Of a stretch of 64,000 nt of DNA, positions 12,191-60,456 are shown piece after piece. Location of the stretch: positions 620,001 to 684,000 of the forward strand of contig JBLDXI010000003.1 of the NCBI GenBank assembly GCA_047495785.1. The letters run 5' to 3'. The position numbers were made by a program, and so were the translations under genes. Under the pieces are notes generated by a model. That model had not been told where the DNA came from. It made no database searches and was given only the letters and a program-made list of their open reading frames with translations. This stretch comes from Lepidodermella squamata. Taxonomy: Eukaryota > Animalia > Gastrotricha. Within the stretch, counting starts at the first letter, position 1. Every line of letters starts with the position of its first letter.

Positions 12191-12231
12191 GGAATTTCCA
12201 TTTTTAAGCAAAAGTTGAGCCATCAACCTAC

Positions 12232-12906
12232 CTAAAGTTTTCCGCTAGTTGAATTTCAGCTCCTTCTTCAGCACGGGTGTTTCATTCAGGTCTTCTTTTC
12301 CTAGACCTCTTGTATTGGGGAAACAATACCCCTCAGTCTCTCTACAGTCTGTCGAACTTAGTAAAAGCACGTTTCCCAGGATTTTCGGTAATAGCACATG
12401 TCACAGGTCAACCACATTCAAATTCAGCCCGAATTTCCGTAAAAAATAAATGTAATAGGTCGCTGAACTTACAGATAATAGACTGCCGTTGAAATCGAGC
12501 GACTGATAAGCAGGCGGCAAATCACAATTGTTCTGCATTTTTATGCAGCAAACCCGATCAAACGACAGAGATGAATGCTGCAACTCCAAAGTAGCACATA
12601 TAGTCTAAATTACAAGATACTTTAAGAAAACAGCAATATAGACCATGTTTATGCCAAGGTGAAATCAAACGTTCACCCGACGTTCTCCTTCCATTTTCCC
12701 AACTAAGAATCATGTGCAATTGCTTGAAGTAACAGTCATAAACAGCGATTCTTTTGGTTTTCAAAGGGAGACTTTCCAATTGTCGGCGAATTGGCGAACT
12801 GTATAGACGAGATATGGTTATCATTCCATATCTCGTCTTTCTCGTCACAATTGTCTTTCCATCGATTGAACGAAAATCGCGATATTATAGCGATATCAGA
12901 TATCAT
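12232..12906 (-). pseudogene. Decayed exon of an unidentified gene family (paralog at 39.3-39.7 kb)
   Basis: Acceptor ttttag at 12907. Fragments KRIAVYDCYFKQLHMILSW..GLYCCFLKV and MQNNCDLPPAYQSLDFNGSLLSVSS lie in different frames with stops; they align with ORF 39267..39707. Confidence 0.6.
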
Positions 12907-13085
12907 CTAAAAAGAGAAAATATGATTAGAATAAATTATACCGAGAATAAAAAGGAATACAATTTACATCTCCAATGATAAAACATTAGTCCTCGTAATT
13001 TCTTTGTAGTTCACTTCAGTTTACTCTCCAAACCTTAATTTTATTACTCCCGACGCAGCCTCAAATTGTTTTAATCAGTCAATGT

Positions 13086-13172
13086 AATATCGAACCCAAG
13101 TTAGGTTCAACACCGAGGCTCTCTATCTACGCTCGAACCGCTGCCTTTAACCCATGACACAGATCAGGTCTC
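13086..13172 (-). mobile_element. tRNA-like/SINE head fragment (second copy at 40096-40183)
   Basis: Two similar copies of about 87 bp; the - strand of the second reads ...gggggttcaacctaacttggg (B-box-like). Confidence 0.35.
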
Positions 13173-13672
13173 TATAGTGTGATTCTATAAGGCCGAAAGC
13201 AGAAAGGAAAATCCCCGCGACACGGCAGTTCCTATCAAATACCAAAGTGCTAGATAGTCTGGTGCCTGAACAGGTCGATTACAGCTATTACACAAAAATG
13301 TGTACGCCTCTAAAAGACGCCGGTTGCCGAGGCAAAATCGAGAGCTGCTACTATGACGTTCGCATCAATCGAAATCCCAAAATCGCAAAGGGGCGAGGAC
13401 GATTTTCTCAACAGGCCTTCGTAATGCATTCTTCTGTAGCTCGCTTCACGAGTTAACTAAGTAAAACTAACGACTGTGAACTATTTGCTCTCCTGTTTAG
13501 ATTCTCTCTGCGGATTCTTCAGTTGTTTAGAACAGCGCATTCTTTTTGGCTGCATTACGGGCAATTGGTGCCGTTGCTTTCTTTGCGTTGTTGTTTGGAG
13601 GTGCTGGAGGCGTGCCATTCGTCGTTGGCTGGTGGCCACTTCGGTCATCGTAAGACTTAGGGACGAAGACGG

Positions 13673-14104
13673 GACGGGAAACGGTTTGTGCGAGCGTTTT
13701 AACCGCGCGTTAGGTGTCATGCTTTCCATCCATGCGAAGAAGAATCGCTCGAGTTGGGATCGCCATCTTGGTCTGGTTATGGGCGCGCATCGCAGTGCCG
13801 AGCACGAATCTACGCAGGTGTCTCTTTGCCAGGCTAACTTTGGCTAACGTCATCTCGCGTTTTCGCTTGCTCCCCCTTCGTCTGATGAATCTGTTATTGC
13901 TGATCCGACACCTGAGGCGGTCGAGAAGCGTACCGAGAAATTCTGGGTTTCTGCTACTACCCGCTGCCTACAAAAAACGTCGGAAGTAGCTGTTTGACCT
14001 GACAGCGCGTATTCGGTTGTTGAACGTTGGTGACAAGGTTCGTTTGGCAACGTTTGTGCGGCAGGGCTAGTTTTCGCCGCGTTATCGTGGACCTTTTGAT
14101 ATCG
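13673..14104 (+). mobile_element. Gypsy-type LTR retrotransposon integrase fragment, interrupted by a gag-like scrap
   Basis: GNGLCERFNRALGVML..WDRHLGLVMGAHRSAEHEST..FG, then VGDKVRL...PRYRGPF (GPY/F module). The insert at 13860-13990 is paralogous to 50755-50890. Confidence 0.8.
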
Positions 14105-16262: not shown

Positions 16263-18170
16263 TCGCCTGTACTTATCTGTTTACTTTTCAGATCGAAGAC
16301 ACAACGGTGCTGAAATGATGTTATCTAATTGAACCGCTCGCTAGCTATTTGCAGCTCTGTTGTTAATTGGTTGAACATGCCAAGCGGACGGACGTGAACA
16401 AAATACTTGAAGATGATCCGGTGCCCGGTGCTGCAACATCGCTTCAAAGTGTGAAAACATGGCTCTACAACAAAACATGCTTGATCCCCTTTCCTATTCT
16501 CGGAAGGCGGCGTGATTACTGCACTGCCGAAAGTGCCCCGTTTGTGCCAAGTATAAAGCATTGAACGTACCTTTAGTATCCATCCGCCCGGTGGATGAGC
16601 CTTTCGCCCTCGTCGATGGATATGGTCAGCACCGTCGAAACGCTTTCAGACAGCTTTTGCCCCACCGGTTGCTGAAAGCACTCTAAAATTGCATTTCATG
16701 TCGACCGTTTAGAGCTGCATACGGATCCCTATGATATCAGGTGCTATCTAAAACGAGAAAAATTTAAATTGAGTAAATCATCAGAAATGAAAAAGGAATC
16801 AATTTTGGATTTTTAAATAGCAAAATGAGTCCTCGGCAAAGCTACTCATTTTTCGCCTCCCGAGACATTCGCCCGTTGTGGACACGCCTCAGCAAACCTC
16901 AGTACCGCCTGCTGCACTGGTAAAACAGGAGTGAACTCAAACCTGAACAAGATGACTCTGATGACTCTGACATGAACACTATTTTGATACTTATATTTGA
17001 GATGATATTGCTCATACTTGCTCATACAAATATGAAATATGTACTTTCTCAAAACCAGCTCATATTTTGCTTCTACCAATTTCATCTTCCTTCGTCCTTA
17101 GATTTCGTCTGGTTATTCCGACGACGACGAATTAAATTCGACGCCGCGCGCCACTTCTTCCGGCGAAGCCACACCGCGCGGAACGCTGAACATTGGCGGC
17201 ATTACTCGTTACGCCATCGGCGAGGCGGAAATGTCAGATAATTTCAAACTGAAGCAAGGAAGTGTTAAGAATTTTTGCGCCTCCGCTCTTCAAGACTACG
17301 CGAAATCCAAGATTTTGGCAATCGTTAACATGAACTCCGAATAATTCAAAAGTTTAAGGGTGCTCCGACAGAAATCGTACAGGAGACAGAATTCACGATC
17401 ATTTGTCGGTAAGATACAATTTCTAATTATTTTATGATCAGGCAGAACGTTTGCAATTTAGCCTTGACCGTTCGAACGAAAGCTCAACCATCGCCATCAT
17501 TGTCTTGAAGGATTCAACGAGTGCTAGCATCATGTACTTTTGGCAGGAAATGACACCTGGGTCACTTATCAACCTGGCCCATCCGATCCCAAACGGCTTT
17601 TGAAAGAATACCAGGTCCTTCCGCGTTGACATGCTTGTCCCGAAGGTGGGTGGCCCGATGAAACGCAACGCTTTCCTGATTGACGGAGTCATTCCTTTGG
17701 ACGCCTGGCAAGGATTCCACCTTCACGTGGAGAAGTTAAACGTCGTTCGTGTGATGTATGCAGCCGAATCCTGTAGCAAACCCGCCTTCGACGGTCGCTG
17801 GGGAATTTCGTGTCACTGCTACCAGAAACGGCCCCCGGAGGTGATCAAGAATCTTATTGCTATCGACTTTTCGTCGAAGGAATTCGGAGGGCTGGCGACC
17901 GAGACGTTCGCCTCAAAGTCGTTGGCCCTGCAACTGCTACCTGCTGCTGTTGTTCACGATTACGAAGAAAAAAATGTCGAAAAAAATCGGCGCCCACTGC
18001 AAGGAGCCACGCAGCCATCGAGGAGGACGTATCGGCTTCGTCCTATTGTTTACAAAATATCTGCTGAAGTGTCGTCTATTTCGTCACCTAGAGATGCTTA
18101 TCAGCTCTGCCTACTTCGTTTCCTATTTCGGTAGCTGATGTGAGAAAATTTTCAGCGGTAACAATAAAAA

Positions 18171-18758: not shown

Positions 18759-20354
18759 TGCTTTGAATAATTTTTAATTTAATTTAATTTTTAAGCTCAG
18801 CTGAAATCAGGTACTTGGGCATGTATGTATTTTTGATACTTGATTTACCCCATGCTTCAATATCAGTGTGCCATACTATTTCAAACCAAATCTATATTAA
18901 TATGTCGCTACACCAAAAGAGCAATTTCTTTCAATCACTAGTACGTATTGTTCAGGCTCTTAATTGCCAGATATCATCTACCTGCGAGCTTCCCCGAACA
19001 CTATGATATAAGTCGTTGATCGTAGTCGTTATCCATTAAATCTACCTCGGTGATCATTATTATTATTAATTTTGTCAGTGCTTTCTACATATGCATGATT
19101 GCTCAATTGAACACTTTCTTTCTTTTTTCTACATATTCTCGGGAGTTTTGCTATATCTTTCATAACTGATTTACATGTTAAGGGGTGCTCGAATTCGAAG
19201 CTTTCCTACATATCTATGTGTCCCTAGTTTGCTCTATTGAGCCATTATTGAGCCACTGGTAATAAATGATTGCATATTCATCTGATTCTTCACGATTTTG
19301 GAAAACGAGCGACTGGCTGATTCAGTTGAAAGCTCATATTAACTATCCTTGCGTTTTTACAGCCAATTTGTCAACCTGTCCGGTTCCATCAGGTAACACA
19401 AATATTATTTTTCATGATAGATAATTTATTCTTATTTCAGAGAAAGGTGAGTTATCACGCGTCACAGGTGGTGGTGAATAATTCAAGTGTTCCATAACAT
19501 AACAGCAACTTTCCTATCATTAATTCTTACCTAACAATAACCCAGTACAAACATATTAAACTCAACTAACTTCGCTTTTTCACATTTCCTCTAGCACTCA
19601 ATACTCAACCAACCCGGCGCGTCTGAATGAGTCACACACAGAGACTTATCTGCGAGTTGCGAGAATTGGGCAAGCAACTTCTGCTATAAGGTATAAGCTC
19701 CTGCTACTGATAAGTTGCGATGGCCTCTTTGGAAATTTGAATTATTTGAATTCAGTAGAGCATCGGAAATTTCCGTTAAGGACACCTTGAATCTGATTTT
19801 TAGCTCAGTTAACTTGTTCCCTCGATTTAGACCGGAATTTGCTGTACGCTTGTACGTATAAGCTAGGCAAATTCAGATTCAGTGCGCGAATGTGATAACG
19901 AAGCAAAAAGAAACATCCGTAAAATTTACAACAGTTTTGTACATTTATCGCCGGTCCAGATGAAATTACAAACCTGAATCACATCATTGATATTATCGAG
20001 CGACGAAGACAAATCGAAGTCGCCGAGCTTGATTCGCTGAAGGTTGGCGCGGTCGTCGTAACGCGAACGCGTCCGGCTCAGGCATTTCCATTCGGCCGAC
20101 TAGAGCTACGTTATACGCTTCTCCCGATAACACAGCGTCTTATCTAAAATGAGGAAATGTACAGAAAATAACTGGAAATGAAGCGGGAATATATTTGAAT
20201 CCTCGAATATTGGCAAATCAATCCCCTTAATGAAATTGTTTCAAAATGGAATCCACTGTCACCGGGCATATCGGCTTTCGTCTTTGGAATTCGAAATTAC
20301 GAGGCGGCCAATGTATTTTCTGCAGGCGAGACCTGCATTTGGCTCGACTCGGGG

Positions 20355-20968: not shown

Positions 20969-21430
20969 TGTCCCAAGAGGCAATCATCAATGCTGATGTC
21001 CCCATGTCCCATGAGGAGCATGGGGAGGGCGCTCAAGAGCCATCAGCTCAGCAGCATAACTTGTTGTGGCCTCACCTTCACCGCAATCCCGTCGGCCAAA
21101 GCCACGGTCAAGCCCAGCCGCGGGACCACAGTCAGGCGCAAGGCCAAGCGATCTTGGAATTGCAGGCGCGATTGAAGCAGCTGCGCACCGATGAGCTCCA
21201 GCTGCAACTGCTTCAGCAGCAGCAGCCGCCCCAGCAAAACACTGCCGCGGGCAACGTGGAGACCACGCTTGCCAGTATCAGCGAAGCGTTGAAGTACCTG
21301 GTCCAGGGTCAAGCGGCAGCCCATCAGGCACCGCCCCCACCAGCGCCGAACATCGCAGTCGCCCTTGGAGCTGCAATTCAAGGTAACGACGTTTATTTGG
21401 CAGGGAATCCTTTCCCACCATTTGATCGCC
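20969..21430 (+). mobile_element. Gln/Pro-rich gag-like N-terminal fragment
   Basis: Start MSQEAIINADVPMSHEEHG is shared with 26774 (MSNNENTNVDIPMFDEEHG), which leads into a gag motif. Confidence 0.45.
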
Positions 21431-21639
21431 GTTTTAAGACTAACGTCCAGTTACTACAAGTAGCAGACAAAAGCATTGAGGATTATTTAATCCTACGCAG
21501 CAACACAATGATCACAGTAACGGTTACTGTTATGAAAGTCAAATTCGCGTAAGATATCGACTCGGCGCTCACGCAAGCCGATTGCCTGCCCAGGTCTTCC
21601 CAACCACTTGCTCATGCCCTCTGATGAGAAGGTTGGCGA

Positions 21640-21765: not shown

Positions 21766-21964
21766 GAATCTAGTTGTGAGCTTGAATATGTCAATAATAT
21801 TTCATACGCTAAATTAAGATGACTTGTGAAATTGTTTTTCTGTGGGAAGTTGTTCAAGAATAGAAAGAGTATAACCGGGCCAAGAGTTGAAAGAGCTGTA
21901 ATGTCCATGTAATGCTGCTGGGGGGTTAAAGTGTTTGATAGTTTTTGAGACTGAATAAAGTAAA

Positions 21965-22300
21965 ATGGAGACGGTGCTAAAATTCAAATTTCTGGGCTGC
22001 CGGCTACTTTACAAAACGGCAGTGAAGGAGGCGCGAATCAGGCTCAAACGCATGGTTGGGGCGATACCGACACTCTTTGCCGACATTGGCTCCTTTCCAG
22101 TGCAGGCAGTCAAGAAGCTGTTTAACGCCTGCGTCCTTGGAGCGTACACCCAAGGCGCGGAGCTGAGGGGCCTGTTCGCTGGCAAACTGGACCTGGCTGA
22201 GCATATGCGCTTTATTAAGAGGTGCTACCACCTTCCCAGAGCCATCAGCCATGACCTGCTTGAGAAGGAGATACACACGAAACAGCGGATTTGCGGTTCT
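21965..22300 (+). mobile_element. Non-LTR (LINE) ORF2 post-RT fragment
   Basis: FKFLGC...KKLFNACVLGAYTQGAELRG...HMRFIKRCYHLP (F.YLG / LF.A.V.....YG.E.WG pattern). Confidence 0.65.
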
Positions 22301-24759
22301 ATTTGCGGATGCAGGAAGCTCAGCCCTGCTCGCTGCTAGCAATGCTTCCCTTCGACGGGCAATGCGCCCAGCAACCTACTCAAACGAGCCGAATCTATCA
22401 TTTCGGATCTAGATCTAGAATTTATATGTGGAAGCTCGCTACCTGAATTCAGCGCGAGCTAGTCCAGCGGCAGCTATTGGTGAAGCGGTGGGAGCTAGTC
22501 GACTGTAGGCTAAAAAGCGAGTATGCCAACCACGAATTCTTCGCGAAGCCGTGCGTGCAAGACGCGGCATATGGGTACTCGCTCGCACTATTCCCTTTTA
22601 CATTTCCACTATGCGAATGATAAACGATGGTAATTACTCGATTGTTAGTAATTACCAGCACAGTTACCAGCTCGTCCTGTATGAATGCTCCATTAATGCG
22701 TGCGAGTCAAGAATGAAAAAAGTCAAGATTGAAGCTACCGAGTGAAAAAGTGCTCAATGATAGCAAAAATCTATTGCGCCGCCAAAATAGCACTGCATTC
22801 GCAACAAGCTCACAGCCTCACAGTCGCCCTTGCTACATTGATGTCTCAGTATGCCATGAAATGATGCACCGCACGTGAATATAGACCGCAAACATCTCTA
22901 AATGATATTATTGTGAAAATCGCGGTCTAATAAGCGTTTTTCAGATGCGGTCAATGCTACACACTGCATTCAACAAGGCCGAAAATTTCACGCTTATTTG
23001 GAACAATAAAAATTTCAATAGGTTCAATAAGTAATTTGCACATGGTGGTCCAAATGAAATTAAAAAATTCACTAACCTGAATCACATGACTGACATAATC
23101 GGAGAGGGACAACACCGAATTCGTTGTCTCAGGCTTCGTTACGCGAGCGCATCCGACTCAGGCAATTCTATTCGGCCGATTGGAGCTGGATGAATTCCCG
23201 ATATCATAGTGATATGGCGTCTCATCTAAAATGAGAAAATGAGAGTAAATAAGCGGAAAAAGCGGGAATTATTTTGAATCTCGAATAGCAGCAAAATTAA
23301 TCGCCTTATGACTTTTTTCAAAATAAAATACGCTCTAATCATGAAATCCATTGTCACAGGACATGCCGGGTTTAATTTTTCGGAAGCTACGGTAGTTAAC
23401 ATAAGTGAGGTTTGATCGACAAATGCGGTTTCTCAGCTGTTCAATTTGTTTGCCATTTCACTGCGAGAATGAAAATGAAGCGGCGTTCAAAATTCTGCGA
23501 AAATATGCTCGTCAAATAATAATTGCTTCCTCTACATTTACCTTTGTTAAACGTTTTCAAATGAGAACAAGGTTCCCTCTCCAGCTGATCTGGGCTGTTG
23601 AATGTGTGGAAAGTTCATCGGTCAGGACAAGGCCGAAGATCGTTGTTATCCCCTGATGGCGGCGATGGCGATGCCACCGATTGCGACGATTACAACCTCA
23701 CTAATGCGAACGACTGGTCGCAAGTCGCGGTGGCTGTTGCCTGTTGCCCGTATTTTTTTCGCTGAAGACCTCGGAAATAATTTCCTATTTCAATTACAAT
23801 GCGCGGACGACCGTCCACCGTTCCCGAAATAGTACCGATCCACAAACATGTTTCGTTGAAATAGGCTGAACATTCCGCTGATGCTTATCGAAGGCGCTGA
23901 GGCTACTCTCTAACCGCCGGAGACGAGATGGCATCATGCGTCAGACGAATGCGAACGATAAACTTGGAACCACCTTTAATCTCTCGCAAAACCGGAGCTG
24001 GATAAATAAGTGAACACGAACTACTCCGATCTGGATAAGGTAGATGCCGAATATGATTTCTTCAGCGAATCAAACGAACTATTAGCCTTAGAGGTCGATG
24101 ACGACGTCTTTGACATTTCATTTCATTGATTCAAATCAATAACTCAAATCTGAAATGGTCTGGCCATTGAAATTTCGCGTCGCAATGTTTATACATACTT
24201 GTTACCTCTCTGTTCTAGAAAACTGCCTGATCCTTTTAGTTAGCTATCCATCTCATCATCTTAATTGCTGTCATCCTTTACGTCAGACATGGTACAACAG
24301 TGATACGGTCACATCTGCATCAGATACGGTCAAATTCTTTGTCTAATCGGCACCTGGAGGCAATCTTACTGGCCCGCCTCAGATCTCGGCACCGGCATCT
24401 GTAGGCGATCAGAACCAGGCACCTGAATCTGAAGACAACATCAATGTCGTTCTGACAACATTCTCAACGACGTTGAGAATGTTATTCCGCTAATAGCTGC
24501 TCCTCCCCAGGTTAGTCCAAAAATTATTCAACTACGACGTCGACGACATTGCTAATTATTTCATATTTTGCAGGCAGTTCCCGACCTGATTGCCGGCGCT
24601 GTTGATCTACCACTGGATATCGACCAGGACATGGAATTAATATTACACATGGATTAATCTTGTTAAGTCTTTTGTTCGCTCGTGCTCTTTCACTGAAGCT
24701 ATACTGTTTTCACTTTCAAGTTGTACCATAATTTTGTCGATGCTAAATTTTCAGATCTA

Positions 24760-25570: not shown

Positions 25571-26959
25571 AACGCCGAAAAATCCACATGTGCGACGACA
25601 AACGAAGCATATAATGAACGTTATATTTAACATTGAATAATCGAATCCGCGCGCGATTTCGCTACAACGCAAGACCACGTGTGTGCTACGTTCACAACTA
25701 CTTTCATTTACACGATTTTTGATCTGTTTGTTCGAGGTGTTGCTGAACGTGGCCGAGTATCGTTTTTCTGAGATTTGTCAACTTTTCAAGAAATGACATG
25801 CCAAGATGCTGGAAAATCTTACCAATCGCATCCTTCCACAAATTATATTCCAGCCAATAGCGATTTTGTGGATTCTTTGGTTCCACTAAGAAAACAAATT
25901 TAAGCAACATTTAAAAATCAAATATAAATATAAATATACAAGTTACCCTTATGGACTGGTGCCATCAACTGGTCCCACTGCCATCGGCCATCATCAATTC
26001 ATCCCTCGGCTACAGCTTGCTAGTGTTATACGGATCCTCCAGATATTGAAGCGCTATCAGTGCAATCTAACATGAGAAAATGTAGAGAGTATTAAATCAA
26101 CGGGAATGAAATGTGAATAAATTTTGGATTAACAAATAGCAAACTGAATCCTTGGAAATTCTTTTGTATTTCACACTTCGTGCTGTTGACGCTCAAACAA
26201 CAGATCGGAACTACATTAACAGACGCTCATTTCAAGTACTGAATGGCCTATGCGCTGAGCAGGCATTGAGCCGAGCACTGGATATTGTCGAAATGTCGAA
26301 AGGCAGATAAGTAGTTTGAATAAATGCAGCAGGAGAGGGCACAGTCTAGGCGACCAAATATGAATATGTGATGCATGTTTTTGGTTCCGATCTAAAATCT
26401 AAATTGCTTCGCTACTGGCCCTTGTGTTCGACGCCTTATCAGGTTGAGGTTTGAATGGTCATGTTGTGGGACGAGCATTCTTGGATTCCAGAGCGAAATG
26501 TGCGTACTGAAGAAATTTACGGCTATCCATTCAATCCCAAATCACTCAAGACAGGTGGCTCAATGCGGCTTCTCCACTGTTCTTCCACTGTCGACTGTCA
26601 ATTATGCGACTATTTTACCGCAGATATGGCACAGAAGTCTGTTTATATGCGGCGTGACGTTTTCTCAAGTCTCAACTGATGCTTTGCCGTATACTGATGC
26701 TCGTACCGTTTACTTTCCTTATAATTCATTTTCTCATTTCTAGTTAAATTAAAAACCCTACCTCTTACCAACCATGTCTAACAATGAAAATACCAATGTT
26801 GATATTCCCATGTTCGATGAGGAGCATGGGGCGGGCATCGAAGAGCCAACGGCTCAGCCCACCGGCCAAAGCCAACAACAGCAACAACTTTCTTGCAAAC
26901 AATTGTCAAATTCAATAAAATCTTCCCCGAACCAAGAAGTTCCTCCTCATCCATGAAGG

Positions 26960-27490
26960 ATTTTTACACTAGGACGCAGCAAGCAGGCGAATCGATCGAA
27001 GCATACGCTTCGGCCCTTCGTTTGCTTGCGGCGCGCCTCGGGGTAGAAGTCGACACCCTAATAAACACCTTTTACGAAGGCCTGACGATAAAGTCCGCCT
27101 GGCGCTCAAAACAGCCACAAAGCCCACGTTTGACTGTACAGTAGCCCTGTATTGTCAGCCTATAGGGAATGAAGCAAAATGAAAAATATCATTTGCCCTA
27201 TATTTCAGATATCAAGGACTCAAAGACGGCTTCAGAAAAAGCTTTCGACGGCGTAATTGCCCGCCTCGTCAATCTCGAGCGAGCAGACAAGGCCGCATCC
27301 AGCGCTATTGGCAACCTTGGCGCAACTGTCAGTGGCAATGCTAACAGCGGGCAAGCGGCTCCGGCCAGAAGCGGCGACGCTTCGGCTCAACCTAGCAGGC
27401 CATGTGTATCTGGTGCCACTGCACCGACCACAAATCAATCGCCTGTCGGCACGCCAAGGAGTGCGACTGCTGCGGCCGCAAAAACCACAG
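26960..27490 (+). mobile_element. LTR retrotransposon gag fragment with two zinc knuckles
   Basis: RTQQAGESIEAYASALRLLAARL...FYEGL (gag Q..GES...Y motif) and CIWCHCTDHKSIAC..CDCCGRKNH; frameshifted. Confidence 0.8.
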
Positions 27491-27549
27491 TCCGCGACGG
27501 GTTCGACATCTCTCCGTTTTCACCTCGACATTCGACCTCGACACCGGCG

Positions 27550-31759: not shown

Positions 31760-31898
31760 TTTGTTGGGAGCAAAAGCTTTGGGGCAAGTGACCCGTAGCA
31801 AGAGAACTTCGGAGCGAGTGAACTCGGGAGCAAGTGACCGGGAGCAAGTGAAGGAGCAACTGACCATACCACAGCTGCAAGAGTGGTATGGTCAGTTG
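31760..31898. repeat. Degenerate ggagcaagtga-type direct repeats ending in a perfect 16-bp hairpin
   Basis: Repeated ggagcaa/ggggcaagtgacc units; caactgaccataccac-N10-gtggtatggtcagttg at 31857-31898. Confidence 0.6.
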
Positions 31899-45920: not shown

Positions 45921-48900
45921 TACCAAGCATCACACGTCCATAGCAAGGCTGAAAAGGGAAGTCCTTTTAGTAGAGCTGTTGGCTGTTGGACTTCGAAGGC
46001 GCAGAGCCTATCAGTAATCTGATGTGAAAGACAAACGCGAAGAAGCCTTTTTTTATTCAGGTAGACCAACATCATGAGAGACCAGTTCGTATTCCGACCA
46101 ATGATGAAGATGGGCCATTTTACGCACATGGACGACGAGAGCCACTTTAGCCTTTGCTTTAGCCACGAGTCACCCGCGCCGACGATCGTCCGGCTCTCGA
46201 GAAAGAGCGTGGAGGAATTTCTAGTCTATGGATGTAGCTCTTTTAACCAGCTTTCCTGCAGACATTCACAAAACCCAAGTCAATGGCGGTCAGGAAATGA
46301 CGAATGACAAGTACTGGGATTGTCTAGCGTCGGTTAACGAGTTGGGACGCGACTTGAAAGCCCAAGATTCGCGTTTTCATTCATCGGATTGTTCCCCAAA
46401 CAATGTCTGAGACTTTAATTCACCGTCCAAAATCTATTGCCGATCAGGGGACTTGCGCAGGCTTTCGCGACATCGCTGAGTGATATCAGCTCTGATATCA
46501 AGACATTTTCTGAAGCTCGAGGATCATCCATCAATTAGCAAATTTTCGTCGTTGAAGTCGCGAGGCGATGAGGAATACCTCCACGTTGAGTCAGCACACT
46601 TTTGGTTACCTGTCTTTTTTAACATTTTGCTTGTTATAGGATGTTCCGCTGATGAAGAATGCACAGCTTACATATTGTTCCAGACGTATAAAGTCGCCAC
46701 GGGCCATGGCGCTATTGTCATTCAGTCAAATTTAGTTAACTGCCGCGATTCGGACGTGGACTATCTGCCGAAAGGTAGAGTTTGTCCAAAACTACGACAT
46801 TATTTGAAATACCTCGAACAGTGTGGTATTAGTGCCTTGATGATGATGACCAATTAAAGATGGGCGGAAGGTCATAATCATTTTGATGAAAAACATCGGC
46901 GCTACTACCCTCTGAAGGACGACAATACTACATTCGACGAGAAGTTCGTGCTAAAATGCTTAGGTATGGATTATTTGAAATATGGCTTCCCGAGTATTTT
47001 ATAATTTCGTAGGTTATCAGTTGCAATCGCAGTTATCATTTGCAAGTAAAAGAGCAAGTTAATAAGTAAGGCGTTTCCGTGCCTCTGTTGTTCGGTTTGT
47101 TTGCTAAAAACGACAAAGATAGCGTGTTCTTGCTGAAACCTCTTGCTGATTAAGGGTTTATTCCAAAGCAAATTTTTCCTCTAATTAAATTGTTATCCCT
47201 TGACGATGGTTCCCTTTTTAGTGCTGTCATGATTGACAAAGATATCAATCAAGCACTCCTTCTCTTGCGCGGATAAAAAATTACCTGATCAAGCAATATA
47301 CTGGAACAGTCAAATTGGCGGAATAAAACGTTTACGGCCTCGATACCCGCACGAACAAGTCCTAACACATCAACGTGTGGTGGTTGATCTAGTTGTTGCG
47401 GGAGGAAGAGTAGGGGACGGCGGCCAGGTGGAGAAATTCTGTCTGTACTAGGGGGCAATGAATGTAGTTTTACGAAATCTACTCCTCGAACAATGCTTGT
47501 AAGTTGAGCTAGGCAAACCCAAATCCGGTCCACGAATGTGATTACGGAGAAAAAACTTCCGTACGATTTGCAACAGTTTCGTACGTTTACCGGTGGTCCA
47601 ATAAAATGGTTAATTCACAAACCTGAATCCCGTCACTGAAATAATCGAGCGTCGAAGACGTGAATTCGCCTCGCCGAAGGTTGGTGCAGTCGTCGTTAAG
47701 CCTACGCGTCCGTCTTAGGGATTCCATTCAGCCGTATAGAGCTACGTTATACGGTTCTCCAGATGTCACAGCGTCTCGACTAAAATGAGGAAATTAACAG
47801 AAATGAATTTTCGAATATTTAGCAATCGATCAATCCCCTTAAGGAAATATTTCAAAATTGAATTCACTGTCGCTGGCTCGACTCGGTCGGGATGACAACG
47901 GTTGAGGGGACTGGGAAAAGGCAAGTTGGCTAGCCACTATCGGTCAAGATAAGCAACGCATCACGGTCATGTTGGCGGCATGACAAGTTGAAAACATGTA
48001 TTTTGATACCGCCCCTGAAGGAAATCCAAGCTCTCCGCCGATTTTACAAATGCGCCCGCTTCATCGGCCGCGATCGCGAAATTCGCAAAATTCGACCCCA
48101 TTCCTCACTGCCGAGCATGGCTTGCATCGGGGCGAAACAGCGCTCGATCTCAAAAGCGGCTGAACCTCGGCGCACAGATTATTGAAACTACCAAAGACAA
48201 GGCAAAAGATTTAATCTCTGGGAAACGGAATAAGTTTTTGTTGTTGAACTAGGAGCTAAGTGCTATTGAAAATAAAATTTTTACAATGACATTGACATTG
48301 TGAGTGTACCCCCTAGATCACGGAGGAAGTTGTAACACTGGCGTTTCTTATGCTGAAAGTTACTACCGAGAATTGGGAGAGTCTCTCGGAAAATGTCTGT
48401 TGTTAATAAGGTGCGATTCCGTCTTCGGCAAGTCTACGTTAATTCGGCATGCCAAGCCAAGTTCTACGAAGGTCAGTGCAAACCCGTTACAGCCTGCGAA
48501 ACAGATCTGAACCATCTCCTGTAGATTGCGTTCCAAGCTGAGACATATTTGTATATTTTGCCGCAAAGAACGAAGACTCGTGCTCGTGCTCAAAAAATCA
48601 TACACCCAGCAATTGTCCGCAGATAGAAACTAGGCAAATGGAATCTTGGGTAAGCTTCAGTTTCAACACCAAAAATTGGCGCTAACGCTTTATTCAGCAT
48701 GTTTCCGGGTTATAATGGGGCTAAAAAAGGGGAAGGTCAAGTGTTCCACGATGGAACCGAATGTTATCAATAGCTTTCGTCAACTTGGTCAAGACCAGAA
48801 GGATGGCAAGCGCACGACCAACATTGTACACTCTGTCTGATATTGAGCGCATTTTCGCAGAACAAGCTCAAGTACATCCAAGCTATTAGACAGGTGTATG

Positions 48901-49570: not shown

Positions 49571-50779
49571 AGGGGAAATTCTCGGCAATTTGGAGCGGAG
49601 GCAGTTCTAAAAACAGCTAAAAACATTTCCTTTTCCCCTCTCAGGAGACTGCACTGCCGAAACTGCCTAGTTTAAGGTCTTTTTTAGTAGTTTGTAGCAT
49701 TGAATGTACCTCTTGTACCCATCCTCCCGGTGGATGAACCTTTTGCCATCGTCGATAAATAGGGTCAGCACCATCGAACTGCTCAGCTCGGAAGACTTTC
49801 AAAGGACAGCTTTCAAAACAACTGGTTGCGTTCGCGGTCTGCGCGTCGACGCTGCTGCCCCGTCGTTTGCTGAAAGAACAATCTAAAATGAGAAAAATTT
49901 AAATTAAGTAAATCATCATGAATGGAAAAGGGATAAATGTTGATTTTCAAATAGAAAAATGAGAAATGAGTCCTCGGCAAAGCTAGACGTTTTTAAGCGA
50001 CCCCGTGCAACCAACATAAGCCCAGTTTCCTCCAACCAACATACTACTATGGATCCGAACGTTCTGGATTTTTTACGATATATTTAGGCATAGGTAATGG
50101 TTTTATTTACATTTTCCCGTACTCTCGATTTCTGGTTGATAGTGACGCGTTCGAGCGGAGGGCATTTTAGTTGTTTCCTCTTGTTGCTTTCGTTGGCGAT
50201 ATTTTTCCTCTGAATGCGCCAACGTCGCCTGACAGATGTGGAATCAGCTTGAACGATACCACCTTTTCCATGGCAACCGTCCCGCCAGCTGCACTGGATG
50301 ATGTTGCTCATCCATGCCCATAAAAATATGTGCTTGCTCAAATCATCGCTCTTATTTTGCTACAACCAACTTTATCTTCCAGTATTTGATTCTATTCATT
50401 GACACACGCGGCGAACATGTGCGATATTTTGAAAGACGACGATCCAACCAGTCAATATTCAACTGGAGATTCCGAATTCGACAGTGACAAATCGATGAGA
50501 CGAAAGACAAAAGCTAAGCGCAAGGCTGAATCGGATACCTTACAACGCCGTTGTGAATGGCGCAACAATGTCAACAGTCATCCCACGCTAAGCTGCGACT
50601 TTGTTCCCAACAGACTGAGAAAGTGTTCTCAGGGTTTTCAAGAAATAATAGGTAGTTATAAATATAATTAGCTAAACACGCGCTTTAGCTAAACAACTAC
50701 CTATTATTTCTATTACCTATTTTTCCATTTCCTGTGTTCATCGCCATTCTGTGCTTTTGCTTGCTTCCTCTACGTCCGT

Positions 50780-50910: not shown

Positions 50911-52848
50911 GCCCTTATACATCACTGTTTGAATCTTTTACTAACTTTCAATTCAAACCTCTACTAAAACATTCTATCACTATGAACTGAGTTGTTTCAT
51001 GTTACGTTGTCAAGCAATAAACCAGTATTGAGCCAATCAGTTGTCTTTTACTTTTTCGACACGTACTACAAATAGTTAAGCATATATAATTCTTCCGCAG
51101 TGAAACAGAGACCGTTTTCCAATAACTTCACGGCTGATTTGAAATGCGTTATTCAGGCGATTGTTGCGGGTTCCGAGCAGCATTTCTCATCGGCTAGCCA
51201 TGTATTTTCCGCTGATCACAGCAGCTAATCGGCGGTTCCGTTGACGCTTGCATCGTTCTCAGGGAGGGGTTTGTGAAGAGTTTCATGAGAAGAGGACATT
51301 TTGACCGATAAAGATTGCTAAGGATTTTGTACTTGGGAAGCCGGTCGGGATGGGTCGCGATTTTTCGACCTGTTCCCACCTCTGAGGTGCTGCATTAGTG
51401 CGCTTATCGCTAATGGATATTCTTGGCAACTTCATGCAGCGCAGAATGACGCAAACGCACACATCAAATGGAACCGTATGATGGAAGATTTACGCCCGTG
51501 GACCAAAGCATAGTAAATGACTTTTTACATCACGGCGAGCCGGTGGCATCGGGTGTCTACAAACAGTTTATGGCGCCAATGTGAGATTTCAAATGCACTA
51601 CCTATTTTGTTTGAAAAGAGAAGGGCGTAGAAAAGATAGTTCAACTGCTTTCCGCTAACTTGCCAGCAACCAGCAACATCTTAAATCCAGGGGGTAGCTG
51701 TGTGATATGTTTCGAGGCGCTTTAGCGCATTGCGCTACATGACTCGCTATTCAGACTAACATGCGCATTCATATAGCGCATCAATACACACCGCCGTTGT
51801 TATCATCAGCTCGGCCAGTGTTATAGGATGACAATACTCGAAATTTGTCGAGCAGCTGTACTCAAGGTTGGTCACAAAGTGCCTCGAAATTCAATCATGC
51901 CCCTCAGCACCAGGTCTCGACTCTAAACACAAGCTTCTTCGCTCCCTGATGGACGAGACACGAGACTGTAGAGTGAGCTATGTGACAGTTGCTCATGGCG
52001 ATAATGCTTCTTTGACTGTACCGACAAACGGCGAAACGGACGACGGGCCTACGCCATAAAAAATCCGAGAGATGAATCTTCCCCCCACTGATTTAGTATC
52101 TGATTCAGAATCCGGATCACTCAACTCCTTGGCTCAAAACGCACCTCAAGGCGCCAGGAAGAAAAATCGGAAGAGTAATGGCGCTAGTAAAACGGACGAA
52201 GAGATGGCCAAAGTGGCAGTTTTCGGCTGATAATGCCAACTCCTTTGATTGTCTGATGTGTGACTTTAATGAATTGTTCTGCATGCTAACCGCCTGTCAT
52301 CGGAATAGCATCGGCAGCTCCGGGATCGAAGATCGCACACTGTCAGCATGCCTACTTATTTTCTAATATTTATGTTATGCATCTGAAATTTTTGCTACGT
52401 ATCAAAAGACTGCTATTATGCGCAATAAATGAATGCATGAGTATCATTTAAAATGTTAGGCTTGGGAAATAATTGAAATTATCGATTGAAAACAACTGAA
52501 AAATGCATTTAAATAATTGAAAAAACTCCCGGAAACTATCGTTTCTTGAGCACGAACCCAGGCTCATTCAAAACCTCCAGGCCAATGTTCTAGACCTTTG
52601 ACGATTTGATAACATCCGGTAAGGTTCGATAACTAGTTGTATTAAAAAATAACCTGAATCACACCACAGATCTCCGAGCTAAAGCTGGAGGCAACATCGA
52701 AGTCTTCGAGCTGGAACCGTTAGGTGGGCGCGTCCCCTTTCAACCTTGTTAGCCTTGGCAGAGGCCACCTGCGACCAAAACCGGTTTGCTCATCGTCGCG
52801 TCGTTCCCAGAGAACATTGGAATATGACGATTACGACTCATCTCAAAA

Positions 52849-53245
52849 AATGAAGGAGCTGGCGGCTTCAATGAAACATGCCCATTTTTCTCTATTCTAC
52901 ACTTTTACGGCTAACGAAAGTGGATCCCCTGGGCTAAGACCATTTGTTAACCGACTCAAAATAGCCGGCCAATTACGAGTACCCCCGATCCTCCGCCGCC
53001 ACTTTACTATACTTTGAACCAGCGCCAAGTAAACGCACTCACTCTGGATCCTGTTCTGTATCCGAAAATTTACGAGGCCAATTTTTACATTATAAATATG
53101 GTCTGGCAGCGAACGGTCCACCATGTCGTCAGATTTGTTGAGAAAAGCCCTTCTGAGATATTAGGAAAGGTCTATACTCACTTCGCGAGAATTGAGTTCC
53201 AAAGTCAGGGGAGTCTTGGAAATAAGGCACATTGCCACGGTGGCG
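52849..53245 (+). mobile_element. Helitron Rep (HUH) domain fragment
   Basis: SLFYTFTAN (motif 1) ... DPVL ... FARIEFQSQGSLGNKAHCH (EFQ.RG..H.H motif 2). Confidence 0.75.
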
Positions 53246-54327
53246 TGTCAATCTCTCACAATGAAGGCGTTAACAACATATATTTTTGAAATCGGGGGAT
53301 CGAAATCCGAGGCATGCCAGTATTCTTTATTCGGAAAATCCAGAGATTCCATCATCAAAAGAGTGAACTAGCGAAAAGAAAAGTTCATGCTATTTCGTTT
53401 TGACACTTTGGTATATTGGGCATACAATGATGCAAATTTTGCCATCGCCTGAACTCGGTGACTAGTCAACCGAAGACGATCGGCCAGAACTGCAGCGGGA
53501 CTAACTACTAACTCGTTTATTATCAATCATCAAGAATACAGAGTACATGGGAAAATGAAACCCGAAAACAATGGTCTCCGAATTTTCCGACTTAAAGGAC
53601 GCGGTTATGGCTATTGGCCGTAGGAAGAAGTGTGAAAAGTCTAGGCAAGAAGCGAATCCCCTAGTGGGAGCAAAAACGCTACAAAGAAGTGTGAGAAGTC
53701 AATCGCCATCAATTTTAAAAGCCGAAACAAAAGATGACGCAAGACTGACTGTGCAGACTCAGCTGACGATTTTCCATTCATTTAAATTCGAGATTTATTG
53801 TGTTTCTTGTTGTTGATGCTTTCAATCAATCAGATCGTCAATTTCTGGAGCTGCCTGCCTGCGAGGCAATTGCCGCACAAAAAGTTGTACCAGGTGACAT
53901 CTGCCTTGGATTTAGCAAATTCATCATTGAAAGTATCCTTAATACGGTTCACCAGCCTGGTATTGTCTCACCAAGTCGTCCGAGCTACATCTGTTCGGCT
54001 TCCAGGCCCATGGCTTGAAAGCCTTCGGTCCTCGGATGCTGAAGAAGAACTTCCCAGCATGGCACTCACGAGACTGCATTAGTGCCCCGGCTAAGCCCTG
54101 CCGCTACATCCCTGATTTTTCCCTAAAAACTAACATATGAGCTTGAGGCTTTCTGTATTCCTTTAAGTGTCCTTGCGATCCTCGCCCTCCTGAGCCCCTC
54201 CCCAGTCACCCAGTAAGCCGATCGTATATTAATTGAGACCTTCCTCTGTCCTGGAAGTCCTCTGTGTATGAGTATGCACAATTCAATGAAATTTAATCCT
54301 TACTCAGATTCGATTACGTCAATCAAA

Positions 54328-54828: not shown

Positions 54829-55639
54829 TTAACTATGTATGAATGAATGTCAAAGTATACCTGCGACAGAAGGGCAGTATTCTCCCGGTCATAAAAATCG
54901 ATCCACTACCAGCTTGAGTAATGTTTGCCTGGCTAGAGGTCATTTCGATCACTGAAAGATGGTCGAACGACTGCTGATTCGCAACCTGCTGGTTCCCCAG
55001 CCATACAGCACCGTCAGGCAGCACTCAGCACTCGGTTGGTGATATATTACCACATTTTTTGAAGCTGCTGGTTGCGCACCATCTGGCCTCGGCGAAGGCG
55101 TCGCTGCCCCAATCCATCTAAAATATGAAAATGTAAATATAATAAATCAACGAAAATTTAAAGATAATCAATTTTGGAATTTCAAATAGATAAATGAGTC
55201 CTAAGATTGGAATTCCTTTTGAATCCTGTAATTTCAATCCCCGACAACTTCAGTCTTGGTCGAAATATGTAAGAAGTCGCCGATTTCTCGAACCATAAGT
55301 TCTCGAGGCGACCGACTATATGATTAGTTGCAAAAATCCACAACTCATCGCTTAATTCATTTCTGGTTTGAATAACTTCAGCTAACAGTGCGTTTACAAG
55401 TTGCTTTTCATCATCTACGACCTTTTCGACAGCCAGCACATCGCATTGCCGTGAGATTTTCCGATATGCTATCGAGTCTGTCCACAGATGAGTCACTTGA
55501 AAAGGCCACACATTTTAATGTGTTTTTCTAGCAAGAAAGCAAAATCCTGTCAGAGAACCTGAAGGCTGACTGAACTTCGCGAGGCGCAAGCGCAGCTCAA
55601 CACCGTTTATGTTTCGTCCTATAGATAACCCAAGTTACA

Positions 55640-55726: not shown

Positions 55727-58348
55727 TTGTCTATTAATTTTGTAGATGTAGACACTGAGACGAACGCCTTTGCATTTTTACCGCTCGTTAAGTTTAGAAA
55801 GAAGTCAATTTTAATCCCTAGCCCTGAAAACCTTTCTGTTCATTTAGGTGTCTATTGGACTCCCTCGGCCAAGTACCATCAGGTATCCTTTTCAATTCGA
55901 CTTTGTTTAGAAGAATTTTCTATTAATCTCTTAAAAGAGCGATCTTTTTTGATAGTCGAACCAAATCAATTCGACCAATAAAACAACGGAAGGTCAAGAA
56001 AGTAACGTTACTTGTGGTCAACAGCCCAAGCGAGGTGGCACGCAAGGCAATGTTCGTCCACTACGCGACATTCCTCCAAGTTCTCAAACATCTATCATCT
56101 CAAGCGAGGGTCTGGCACATATAGAGCTACAATGAACAAATATGCTCCGTTTCGCTCTTGTAGGATTTATGTCATCATTTGAGCTCAGCGAGCTTGTTGT
56201 CACACCACCTTCGACCGCCGACAAAACCTGCTTGTCCTGCACAAGGCATGCCGGTTGACCCAAGTATCTGCTGCTGCTGTTGCCGCTCGGTTCGGGGAAT
56301 GTTACGGATGATCGGGCTGTGGCTGGCGACGGTGATCGTCGGCTCGGTGTTGTCATCACTGATGATGAGCTTATTGCGGAGATTTTCCTCGGGATCCAGT
56401 CGTCCATGTTGGACAGGCGGAAAGTACGCTGAGATATTGATACGGTGAACAACTGCTGCGAAATTCGATTGATCAGTTCGAAGATTTAATTATCGCTGGG
56501 AACTATTTGAAAGATGTACAATTATTCTGCACTACACGTCATCCGATTACGAAAGAGGGTTTTCGGAAACCAATCGACATCAAACATCAAACGGATGACC
56601 GCAATCGGCTTAAAGTTCATCCTTGTATTTGTATGTTTTCGTAGATTTCTATGACCTAGTTTTGTGTAGCTTCGTCTTGTCCCTTGTCCAATGACAGGAC
56701 GCAACTTGGTGCGATTCCAATGGGAAACATTACAATGGGAATGCTTTGCGCCTTCAAATTCTCACTTTCTACGCTGGTTCTTTGTCGAGCGCGAGAAAAT
56801 TATTGTCAATCAAGAGTGACAATAGAGGTTGTAAGCTTATTATCTGTACACTTGGACCGCTCGTGACGACTAGGACCTCGCCCAGCTCGACGATTGTCAA
56901 ATATATTATCACGATCAAGCCTTCGCATCGGGCTCCCGTTCGCGGCAAAATGGCCGTGCTGATCAACGCTGCTCCAGCTATTAGCCTCGTCGGCACCTCT
57001 ACCTCAAGGTTAGCTTAAACAAATTTGGCATAATATTCGAAATATTTTTCGATGTTACAGCGATATCAGTGCAAACTAAAATAAGAAAACGTAAAGAGTA
57101 TTAAATCAACGTCTGTGAAAATAAAATAACTCAAGGTGATTTCTGAGTCCCTTGTGAGTAAACAGAGTGGCCATTTGTCTGGCATTCTGATTTCTAGGTA
57201 AGACGAACGCCATCAACGATCGACGAACAGCTTCGACGCTAAACACAGATGCGCCAATACTATTCATAACTGACGGCCTCATTTCGGTCGGAGCCGGCCA
57301 GAAAATAACCTACAGAACTGACGCGACATCGCAAATACATTTGAACCCCGCCACGCCCTCGTTAACCTACCTGCGCACCCGCACCACCTAACGAACTACT
57401 TATCGAACTTTTGTATTACAGTGTTTGGTCGTGCTCATCTGCCGGCTATTCCACGTCAATGCCTGGAAGGTTTGCCAGCTCTCGCCGCAACATTCCCGAG
57501 AAACCTGAAAATCAGGCTGAACAGCCCAAGCCGTTTTCCGAGATGAAAGCCACCAAACACAAAAATCGAAAGAAAGGTATGTCTTTCGAAATTCCTTTCG
57601 AAATTCGGAATAGCTAATTCCAATTTATTCAATTTTCCATATGAACTTATCATAAATATGAACTTATTATATGAACTTTCATGAACTTTTTTCGAAATCG
57701 AAAGGCTCCAATCGTAAAACAAGTCGCGTCAACTTCCAACAACACAATCCTGACTCATCAGTCGATTTATCAGCCAATATCTCGGGAATTGAACCCATTG
57801 CCAGGTCCTCTCCCAACCCGATTACAGGTTTGAATATCATAGTTTTTATTGAAATCGTATTCTTCAACTATCCACTTGCCATGCAGACCTATTCGATAAT
57901 TCGGTCTTGGCAATGCGAAGATCCAAGAAAAGGAAAGTGTTCATCGATTCGTCGCTCATCCCGATGACCCCGCGCACGCCGCCGCTGCTACCGCTGCTAC
58001 AGCCGAACTCGAGACTGCCCGCGCTGCCTCAATCGCTGCTCGAGATGCCCTGGGCATTGCGATCGACGCCGCCTTTCGCTCTAGGCGAACACGCCGAAAA
58101 CGTCGGTTAGCCGATTTGATTCTAGTCCGATCAACGCGATCAACGCGACCGCTGGGATTGGGCCAGCTCGAGGCTATCCGCGCCAGTTCCAAGCACGCCA
58201 GCAACCGCGACATCCCGGTCGTCAAGACTCAGGAAATCGGCCTGCGTCCGCTCAAGGCGGCGCTCACAACGACCCACCGTGTCCTCTTCCCCAGCGCCAG
58301 AATCACACTGCTTCGCAGTGCAACTAGGCGAAAGCTGAGAGCAGATCG

Positions 58349-58599: not shown

Positions 58600-58820
58600 T
58601 TGCAGGTTCTCGTAGTTACAAATAGATTGACCAAACGTATGGGAGTGCTATCGAAAGTCCAACAAGGCGAGGCAAACGCAGCCCCTGATGAAATCATTCA
58701 AACTTTGCTCGAAGACTTGCCGAAACTGGTTGAAAAATACCGCCCGCGGCGTCGTGTAAACATGGACGAAATGGCGCTGTTTTACGAACAAATGCCGCGT
58801 CGCTCGTATGTTCTAGGCGA
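58600..58820 (+). mobile_element. Tigger/pogo transposase fragment
   Basis: QGEANAA...LPKLVEKYRPRRRVNMDEMALFYEQMPRRS (Y....I.N.DETGLF....P..T). Confidence 0.85.
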
Positions 58821-59139
58821 CGGCTCAATATTTCGCTTACCCTCCGGTAAATCAATTGACCTCGATGCTGGCTTCACTAATACTGTGCTGCACAATCTAT
58901 ACAAACGTTTTCTGACTGTTTATGATCTGGATTTTACCTCTGTAACAGAGAGACCAGAGTGACACTACGCCCCCAATTGTAAAACTGTTTATGATAGGTT
59001 GACTAATAAAGTGTGAGAGATAGGCGTTCTCTTCTTTACATGTGAAGGCTTTCGTCTCTGTACCGATCAACATCCTAATTAATAAGCTAGAAGAAATTAA
59101 TGTGTGCGGTAACCTTTTAAATTGACTCAGAAGCTATCT

Positions 59140-59400
59140 TTGTGGTAGGAGCTTCAAGGTTCTTGTCAACAATGCTGTCTCAAGCGAATTTAAAATTCCG
59201 TCCGGAGTCCCTCAAGGCTCAGTCCTTGGGCCACTACTTTTTGTTATTTTCATGTTATTCGTCGACGAGTGCATTGTTAATTCTGTGACGAAGTACTTCG
59301 CTGATGACACCAAAATATTCAAGCGAGTCCGTTGTGTGCAAGACTGTGTTCAACTTCAAACCGATCTCGACAACATTGTTAAATGGTTTCCTGACAATCA
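59140..59400 (+). mobile_element. CR1/L2-like LINE reverse transcriptase core fragment
   Basis: SGVPQGSVLGPLLFVIF...KYFADDTKIF...LQTDLDNIVKW. Confidence 0.9.
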
Positions 59401-59913
59401 ATAGTAATAAATGTTTTACGTCTTAATGGAAGAAAATCTACGGACGTTGCAAATTTCACACAAATTAATCGCCGATTTATTAATTTGTGGAATAGCCTAC
59501 CATATGATGTTGTAGCTGGTTCAATTAATAATTGCGAGACATAAAATCGAATTCCGGAACTTTACCAGCTTTTAGAGTTATTCGCTTTAACGCAATTTTC
59601 GCCTACGCGCAACTTTTCCTTGTAGCCACTGAAATTGCGCTATAGCGGGGGCTGACTGTATATGGTATACGGAGTTGGCTCTCACAACCAAACCATGTCG
59701 ACTGAGAAATTCCCGCCGTACTTAGATGCCATTATTATTCTGACTTCTCGCGTGTATCTCAAAATGTCTGTAGTCAAGCGCGAGAAAATTATGATCAATC
59801 ACGTCTGTAATAACGCTCTTCTACGTGCAACTCTCGCCGTTTTCACCACTTAAAATCGTGCTCTCATCTTTGGGATTTATGCACTTAATCAATTAATAAA
59901 TAAAATAGGATGT

Positions 59914-60074
59914 GGATATGTGAACACAGGAAAAGTGTATCGCGCATTGGCTATGCGCAATGTGCGTGACACACAGCCAAATTTAAGCGCGCACTGTGTT
60001 CAAGTAGCCAATCACGCACACACAATGTGTACGCATAGCCATTGGGCGATACACACTCCTGTGTTCACATAGCC
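59914..60074. mobile_element. Small palindromic MITE
   Basis: ggatatgtgaacacagga..gtgtatcgc..attggctatgcg ... cgcatagccattgggcgatacac..tcctgtgttcacatagcc. Confidence 0.75.
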
Positions 60075-60456
60075 ATGACCGATAAAATACTCACCCATAC
60101 GGCCATCAACTGGAGGCAGTGCCGTCCTCAATTGATTTCGAGGCTACAACTTGCTATCCATCCGTGCCATGAGTAGCTTGGTGTCGGCGAATTTGGAAAC
60201 GCTTGACGACCCGTCAATTAAGACATATAGATTCAACGCGTTGTGTGTATTCCTTCCTTCAGCTGTAATAACACTCTATGTAAGATGAAATATAAAAAAT
60301 ATTATTCTAGTAGCAAATTCATTCGCTTTGAGGTAAAATTGGGGCATAAGCGAGCAGATGGAACATAATAAATTCTGAATTGAAAGTATTCATCAAGTTA
60401 ATTTCAATATCCAATAAATCGATAGCATTTCGCTTCGTACATTCCGGCACCGGCAA

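Follow-up and report, generated by a model that had tools for sequence, protein, structure and literature searches.

The locus and its repeated cassette

The stretch of DNA analysed here, referred to as the window, comprises 64,000 nucleotides of the gastrotrich Lepidodermella squamata (positions 620001-684000 of contig 3, in a genome of 121 Mb and 151 contigs). Between two minus-strand genes for TRIM-like RING/ankyrin proteins (ubiquitin ligases), located at 8941-12538 and from 60457 upward, lies an array of about 45 kb in which a cassette of about 400 bp recurs. An nhmmer profile built from six copies gave 11 matches at E<1e-4 and 14 at E<1, all on the minus strand. The six full copies (E 1e-119 to 2e-87) were found at about 19.9-20.3, 23.0-23.4, 29.3-29.7, 33.2-33.6, 42.1-42.5 and 47.5-47.9 kb, and together with 7-8 partial copies (five matches at E<1e-4 and a further three at E<1) the array spans 12.9-57.1 kb. 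Splice acceptors were placed at 12905, 16747, 20143, 23225, 26066, 29554, 33456, 42319, 45140, 47779, ~49882, ~55117 and ~57075. The start-to-start spacing of the cassettes is 2.0-3.9 kb, except for one 8.9-kb gap that contains a young composite insertion (36.5-39.1 kb) and a truncated 5' end of the neighbouring gene.

The splice signals of the cassette were intact wherever copies could be aligned, with a polypyrimidine tract and AG in 9/9 acceptors and GT in 8/8 donors. The cassette exons measure 149-182 nt, share no reading frame and contain stops in every frame; their interiors are 62-82% identical between copies and carry indels whose lengths are not divisible by three. Conservation is highest at the donor, the acceptor, an exon core of about 50 nt and an intron block about 50-65 nt upstream, and approximately 130 nt of the upstream intron is conserved as well as the exon itself. 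Beyond blocks of about 400-700 bp, the homology between copies stops abruptly. These results confirmed the conserved cassette with minus-strand splice signals, recurring in units of 2-4 kb, that an earlier reading of the bare sequence (the original prediction) had described.

The cassettes fall into three types, A (20k, 29k and 47k), B (23k, 33k and 42k) and C (16k, 26k and 49k). The order B-A-C is present twice, shifted by 9.2-10.2 kb, and therefore the array owes part of its growth to duplication of a block of three cassettes. In addition, some spacer pieces are common to several units and keep their order. The view that the spacers are variable and unrelated holds only in part, given these ordered shared pieces and the higher-order repeat. 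Self-comparison of 12-60 kb revealed direct repeats only. No cassette was found elsewhere in the 121-Mb genome, where all five matches fall inside the window, or in the 10-kb flanks; the search that the original prediction had proposed thus returned no second cassette array.

Two further features of the repeated units were observed. The type-B cassettes carry an extra block of 90 nt (22881-22971, 33023-33113 and 41937-42027; 80-84% identical) in the intron that follows, at a distance of about 100-250 nt from the donor; this block was not covered by the RNA contigs described below. Moreover, two open reading frames (ORFs) on the plus strand, at 18171-18758 (195 codons) and 27257-27976 (239 codons), occupy equivalent places in the two three-cassette blocks. 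They show 72% DNA identity, have no Pfam match and encode serine/proline-rich middles and basic tails resembling AT-hooks; that they are still open at such equivalent places is surprising for neutral relics so diverged.

Minus-strand splicing and the downstream gene

A search for sequencing runs returned two, neither of them a small-RNA library, and both were placed on 19850-25849, divided into 30 bins: X1, a run of 2015 guessed to be RNA (6% of sampled words) and used as assembled contigs of depth 4-15, and X2, a DNA-like run (85% of sampled words). X2 covered 29/30 bins and X1 only 11/30, which centre on two cassette exons, a high-copy 125-bp repeat and mismatched pieces over a transposon relic of the long interspersed nuclear element (LINE) class; the mismatched pieces probably derive from paralogous copies. 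The assignment of X1 as RNA is a guess, for which its exon-only coverage argues strongly.

An X1 contig joins 23077 directly to 20143, skipping 2933 nt. The skipped part ends in CT..AC, that is GT..AG on the minus strand, and the joint coincides with the donor predicted for the 23k cassette and the acceptor predicted for the 20k cassette. A second contig, ending at the predicted 20k donor (19974), runs on for 66 letters, and the 30 of them that were shown match 16718-16747 exactly and uniquely. Furthermore, an X1 piece ending at 23226 runs on for 10 letters, which match the window only once (25824-25833), at the 3' end of a non-cassette exon of 63 nt that is followed by GTAAG; this match is weak, as 0.2 chance matches are expected. 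The X1 joints were missing from X2, and therefore the joined form is not genomic. Cassette-to-cassette splicing on the minus strand is real, and the spliced minus-strand transcript that had been predicted exists, as seen in the joint 23077 to 20143 and the continuations to 16747 and 25823. The joined exons (559 nt) contain stops in all three frames. RNA-confirmed canonical introns and exons without a conserved ORF are features of a spliced long non-coding RNA (lncRNA) or a non-coding leader.

X2 also showed two variants within this segment. At 23370-24170, a second haplotype carries dense substitutions and small indels in the intron, and a 1-nt insertion polymorphism lies in the 23k cassette exon (after 23195), which is consistent with a non-coding exon.

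At its downstream end, the array meets the 5' end of the RING/ankyrin gene. The predicted start-codon exon of this gene (12473-12538) sits in an exon-like block opened by the cassette-type acceptor 12905. From the ATG at 12538, 22 codons lead to the GTAAGT donor at 12473, in frame with the RING exon that starts at 11633 after AG, and eight upstream ATGs lie between acceptor 12905 and the start ATG. When the RING exon was searched against a protein database for a transcript contig with the 5' leader, no match was found in a collection from which the organism appears to be missing.

A truncated copy of this 5' end lies within the array. Its start-exon paralogue at 39395-39461 shows 78% identity and has a donor identical to that of the start exon, and the copy is broken by the younger composite insertion (36534-39071), whose dispersed copies are 91-96% identical. 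Apart from one 28-codon piece, tblastn found no RING/ankyrin relic in 12.2-60.4 kb, and no non-transposon Pfam domain was found in the 211 open-frame pieces of the array. The claim that the region lacks an intact gene therefore holds, since it holds no more of a gene than the pseudo-5' fragment and the downstream gene's start exon of 66 nt. Because no further RING/ankyrin relic occurs, the array looks like a repeated partial duplication of the 5' non-coding part of the gene rather than a series of whole genes that have decayed.

Transposon relics and their orientation

Relics of transposable elements (TEs) were identified by a Pfam scan of open-frame pieces of at least 66 residues (124 on the plus strand and 87 on the minus strand), and by taking fuller copies from the genome and searching their long ORFs against the window by tblastn. 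Among the plus-strand pieces, the scan matched Retrotrans_gag (1.3e-5), RVT_1 (1.7e-7), Integrase_H2C2 (9e-4) and Helitron_like_N (9e-4); no TE family was found in the 87 minus-strand pieces. A scan of the 10 longest plus-strand and 6 longest minus-strand ORFs of the region gave nothing at E<=0.01. The fuller copies comprised a LINE with a 1170-aa endonuclease and reverse transcriptase ORF (L010), a Ty3-like element with gag, reverse transcriptase and RNaseH (L013), an element with a 444-aa P-element-like transposase containing TNP-like_GBD (L011), a Helitron-like element (L015) and an unclassified element (L008). Inside the array, their ORFs matched on the plus strand only, except for L008, which has ORFs on both strands.

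Counting relics by Pfam match or by homology to long TE ORFs, nine lie on the plus strand, none on the minus strand and one is ambiguous, giving a one-sided p of 0.002 for 9/9 under a 50:50 expectation, although the two gag pieces may stem from one insertion, as may the two Helitron-like pieces. This tally bore out the claim that the orientable scraps all code on the plus strand. Three elements read by eye, namely a pogo-like piece (58597-58959), a LINE N-terminal piece (49256-49504) and an integrase core (13461-13844), had no Pfam support at E<=5 and were not counted. The relics are 74-91% identical in DNA to their best genomic copies and 54-85% at the protein level, and many spacer segments have dispersed genomic copies at 73-98% identity. 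That the TE content consists of small scraps was accurate for these relics, but younger whole insertions are also present, at 36.5-39.1 kb and as a foldback at 54.3-54.8 kb.

Two of the nine oriented relics, the gag and LINE pieces at 21-22.6 kb, fall within intron 20144-23076, which the RNA contigs verified. Across the three introns reached by X1, the relics sit in intron sequence and do not appear in the contigs, which drop rare unspliced RNA. In this part of the array, the spliced product is accordingly a chain of cassette exons and not the TE-antisense library that had been proposed.

Three repeats in the array were noted separately. The foldback at 54326-54832 (507 bp) has arms that are 93% complementary and at least 40 genomic copies at 83-87%; it resembles a miniature inverted-repeat transposable element (MITE), and its orientation is unreadable. 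A repeat of about 125 bp at 24755-24881, also present in X1, has at least 25 copies at 94-99%, and one of about 255 bp at 37618-37881 has at least 30 copies at 89-92%. Both are MITE-like or resemble a short interspersed nuclear element (SINE), and no tRNA-like part was found in either.

The features of the array and of the downstream gene are collected in the table below. Beyond that gene, a large minus-strand gene at 1-7000 is rich in EGF-like (epidermal growth factor-like) cysteine repeats, and one of its exons encodes a Ser/Gly run of about 100 residues (12-nt tandem repeat, 1107-1391).

Table. Cassette exons, transposon relics and gene parts, by position in the window
Feature	Position	Strand	Evidence
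Downstream TRIM-like RING/ankyrin gene body	8941..11633	-	Pfam RING and Ank matches; in-frame junction
Exons of downstream gene	RING exon starts 11633; ankyrin exons 10138-10686, 8941-9732	-	
Predicted start-codon exon of downstream gene (22 codons, donor GTAAGT)	12473..12538	-	Sequence; in-frame join
Partial cassette c12k	12864..12999, acceptor 12905	-	nhmmer E=0.018; blastn to other cassettes
Long terminal repeat (LTR) retrotransposon integrase relic, zinc-binding part	13457..13657	+	Pfam Integrase_H2C2 E=9e-4, below curated cut-off
Cassette exon c16k	16571..16747	-	5' end RNA-confirmed; donor 16571 predicted
Cassette exon c20k, 170 nt	19974..20143	-	Both ends in RNA contigs
Ty3-like gag relic	20986..21507	+	tblastn 54% to L013 gag-region ORF
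LINE ORF2 C-terminal relic	21959..22590	+	tblastn 57-69% to L010 ORF
Cassette exon c23k, 149 nt	23077..23225	-	Both ends in RNA contigs
Non-cassette mini-exon, 63 nt	25823..25885	-	10-nt X1 loose end, unique in window; weak
Partial cassette c26k	26007..26163, acceptor 26066	-	nhmmer E=6.5e-10
Ty3-like gag relic	26780..27488	+	Pfam Retrotrans_gag E=1.3e-5; tblastn to L013
Predicted cassette exon c29k	29396..29554	-	nhmmer E=6e-108; AG/GT intact
P-element/THAP9-like transposase relic	30025..30501	+	85% protein identity to L011 ORF
Unclassified element relic	31894..32992	Probably +, ORFs on both strands	91% DNA identity to L008, collinear with 628-aa ORF
Predicted cassette exon c33k	33293..33456	-	nhmmer E=1.6e-106
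Helitron-like relic	34500..34817	+	tblastn 69% to L015 ORF, family of the 53-kb relic
Pseudo-5' copy of TRIM-ankyrin gene	35267..40183	-	blastn 77-84%; tblastn
Parts of pseudo-5' copy	First 28 RING-exon codons 35267-35350; start-exon paralogue 39362-39725; upstream piece 40037-40183	-	
Predicted cassette exon c42k	42160..42319	-	nhmmer E=9e-95
Predicted cassette exon c45k, divergent middle	44959..45140	-	Two nhmmer matches, E=2.6e-16 and 8e-06
Predicted cassette exon c47k	47623..47779	-	nhmmer E=2e-87
Partial cassette c49k, acceptor side	49882..49954	-	blastn to c16k, 69% over 340 bp; nhmmer E=0.32
Partial cassette c52k, donor side	52645..52732, donor 52654	-	nhmmer E=3e-05
Helitron-like relic	52814..53286	+	Pfam Helitron_like_N E=8.7e-4, below curated cut-off; tblastn to L015
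Partial cassette c55k, acceptor side	55115..55189	-	blastn; nhmmer E=0.15
Weakest, most upstream cassette-like piece	57051..57129	-	blastn 78% to c26k; nhmmer E=4.9
LINE reverse-transcriptase relic, upstream of last recognisable cassette	59048..59401	+	Pfam RVT_1 E=1.7e-7; tblastn to L010

Origin and possible roles of the array

We favour, with a probability of roughly 0.55, the interpretation that the minus-strand transcription unit is a non-coding leader or lncRNA with many exons, which arose by local duplication, and that its intronic TEs show the usual antisense bias. The region would be a single RNA polymerase II transcription unit with about 13 paralogous non-coding cassette exons. A segment with one non-coding exon may have been duplicated locally many times through unequal crossing-over, of which the three-cassette repeat and the partial duplicate of the 5' end of the downstream gene would be traces. 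The cassette exons would be spliced serially, with RNA support for the chain from 25.8k through 23.2k and 20.1k to 16.7k, and, judging from acceptor 12905 and the in-frame ATG exon, the chain probably reaches the exon in which the downstream RING-ankyrin gene has its start codon. It would then form a long leader rich in upstream AUGs, or else an lncRNA isoform of its own. The intervals of 2-4 kb from one cassette to the next would represent introns in which transposons landed and then decayed, and only antisense copies would have survived because sense copies carry polyadenylation and splice signals that break the transcript. Likewise, the 400-700 bp around the exons would still be recognisable because indels in these zones would impair splicing.

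In mammals, intronic TEs are known to be biased towards the antisense orientation and to be scarce close to exons; sense insertions with termination or splice signals are removed by selection and insertions close to exons are hazardous (PMC3517506, PMC1794541, PMC3088655). Antisense intronic TEs, conserved TE-free surroundings of exons and the loss of homology further out are therefore expected of a long-lived multi-exon transcript. The locus resembles such ordinary long introns in its GT-AG introns of 2.5-3.9 kb, its antisense relics and its conserved TE-free exon flanks, and differs from them in that the bias is complete (9/9) and the exons are non-coding paralogues of each other. An exon whose proximal intron is protected, combined with TE turnover in the distal intron, can account for the layout of cassette and variable spacer. 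A small-RNA role would be unnecessary to account for any feature, and the claim of a new system, which the original prediction had raised, is not warranted.

Several observations weigh against this interpretation. Introns typically show an antisense bias of 60-75%, which the 9/9 orientation exceeds (p about 0.01-0.08 if that bias applies), and the exon centre of about 50 nt is conserved without a known reason. The RNA support consists of contigs of one run of guessed RNA nature, with 28 letters on the shorter side of the key joint. Moreover, the link from the 16.7k exon through the 12.9k exon to the gene was not seen in the RNA contigs, which were placed on 19850-25849.

The same strand bias suggested a possible alternative, to which we assign a low probability: a uni-strand piRNA (PIWI-interacting RNA) cluster of the flamenco type, in which an unspliced or partly spliced minus-strand precursor would yield piRNAs antisense to the relics, and licensing, either promoter-proximal or linked to splicing, would come from the repeated cassettes. 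Flamenco, too, is a spliced locus with abundant antisense TEs (PMC10643416, PMC10495008), and like it and other uni-strand clusters the locus combines spliced single-strand transcription with TE fragments from many families, all orientable relics (from at least four superfamilies) being antisense to the transcript. The genome also contains a PIWI-clade gene (L004), whose best solved relatives are Piwi-A, MILI and Siwi (E=9e-60 for Ephydatia Piwi-A vs. 1e-31 for AGO), in addition to an Argonaute gene whose PIWI domain matches human AGO2 with E=4e-122 over 240 residues. A piRNA source was kept as a rival on account of the complete bias, the presence of PIWI and the splicing of flamenco itself. 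On the other hand, the relics of the verified part lie in introns that separate short repeated exons, and the assembled RNA lacks them; the relics are also old, so few long perfect matches would be available as guides. Unlike flamenco, the locus is small (about 45 kb) and periodic, and it probably runs on into a protein-coding gene. A variant that we consider unlikely would distribute the source over the introns: the nascent minus-strand transcript or excised introns would give rise to putative guides of piRNA or small interfering RNA (siRNA) type directed at the antisense TE relics, and the cassette (the exon plus about 130 nt of intron) would act as a licensing or processing module tied to splicing. 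As a separate observation, about ten loci with Argonaute/PIWI domains were found in the genome, several of them clustered (C9 at 1.70-1.78 and 2.19-2.24 Mb; C25 at 1.04-1.05 Mb; C41, C55 and C56), including at least one of the PIWI clade (C55) and one very close to vertebrate AGO2 (C41).

The transcript may instead be a functionless by-product, produced by read-through or conjoined transcription across a graveyard of partial duplications in which old exon copies still splice. The same-strand paralogous TRIM-ankyrin genes flanking the array, the truncated gene 5' end within it, the low RNA depth and a proximal intron conserved as much as the exon are all compatible with this explanation, which nevertheless appears doubtful, as 17/17 alignable splice sites are intact though the exon interiors have diverged and accumulated indels, and the abrupt ends of homology suggest protected blocks. 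A tandem-repeat host gene for intronic small RNAs, with one small nucleolar RNA (snoRNA) or microRNA (miRNA) per intron, would also account for a tandemly repeated, serially spliced non-coding exon and for the conserved 130 nt of upstream intron, and SNHG14 (SNORD116/115) and C19MC similarly have one non-coding exon and one intron per unit. Unlike in those loci, no conserved structured small RNA was found in the introns, and intron content varies by unit. Rfam gave nothing in the 64 kb, a tRNA scan was equally negative, the consensus fold was weak (-11.4 kcal/mol over 400 columns), and nine cassette segments folded no better than shuffles (z -0.4 to +1.3); this explanation is very unlikely and largely refuted. 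Least probable of all is that the cassette belongs to a dispersed mobile element or that the units are decayed whole gene copies. The repeats share one orientation, and their spacing is near the length of the neighbouring gene (about 4 kb). However, the cassette was located nowhere else in the genome and not in the 10-kb flanks, excluding the terminus of a mobile element, and the single 28-codon RING piece recovered by tblastn led to the rejection of decayed whole genes, both at the sensitivity of blastn, tblastn and nhmmer.

With respect to its position, the array resembles the alternative first exons of protocadherin and UGT1A genes, which are likewise paralogous 5' exon arrays upstream of shared downstream exons. 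It differs in that the cassette exons have acceptors, join each other and are non-coding.

If the transcript is only a non-coding leader or lncRNA, the locus would be a clean natural example of exon duplication building a long multi-exon non-coding transcript, and would show selection on intron content, visible in the wholly antisense TE orientation and in the zones protected around exons. Should small RNAs arise from the locus, it would show that a non-model animal can keep TE-antisense guide libraries within the introns of a spliced host transcript. Either way, the array bears on the expansion and decay of TRIM-like RING-ankyrin gene arrays in this genome.

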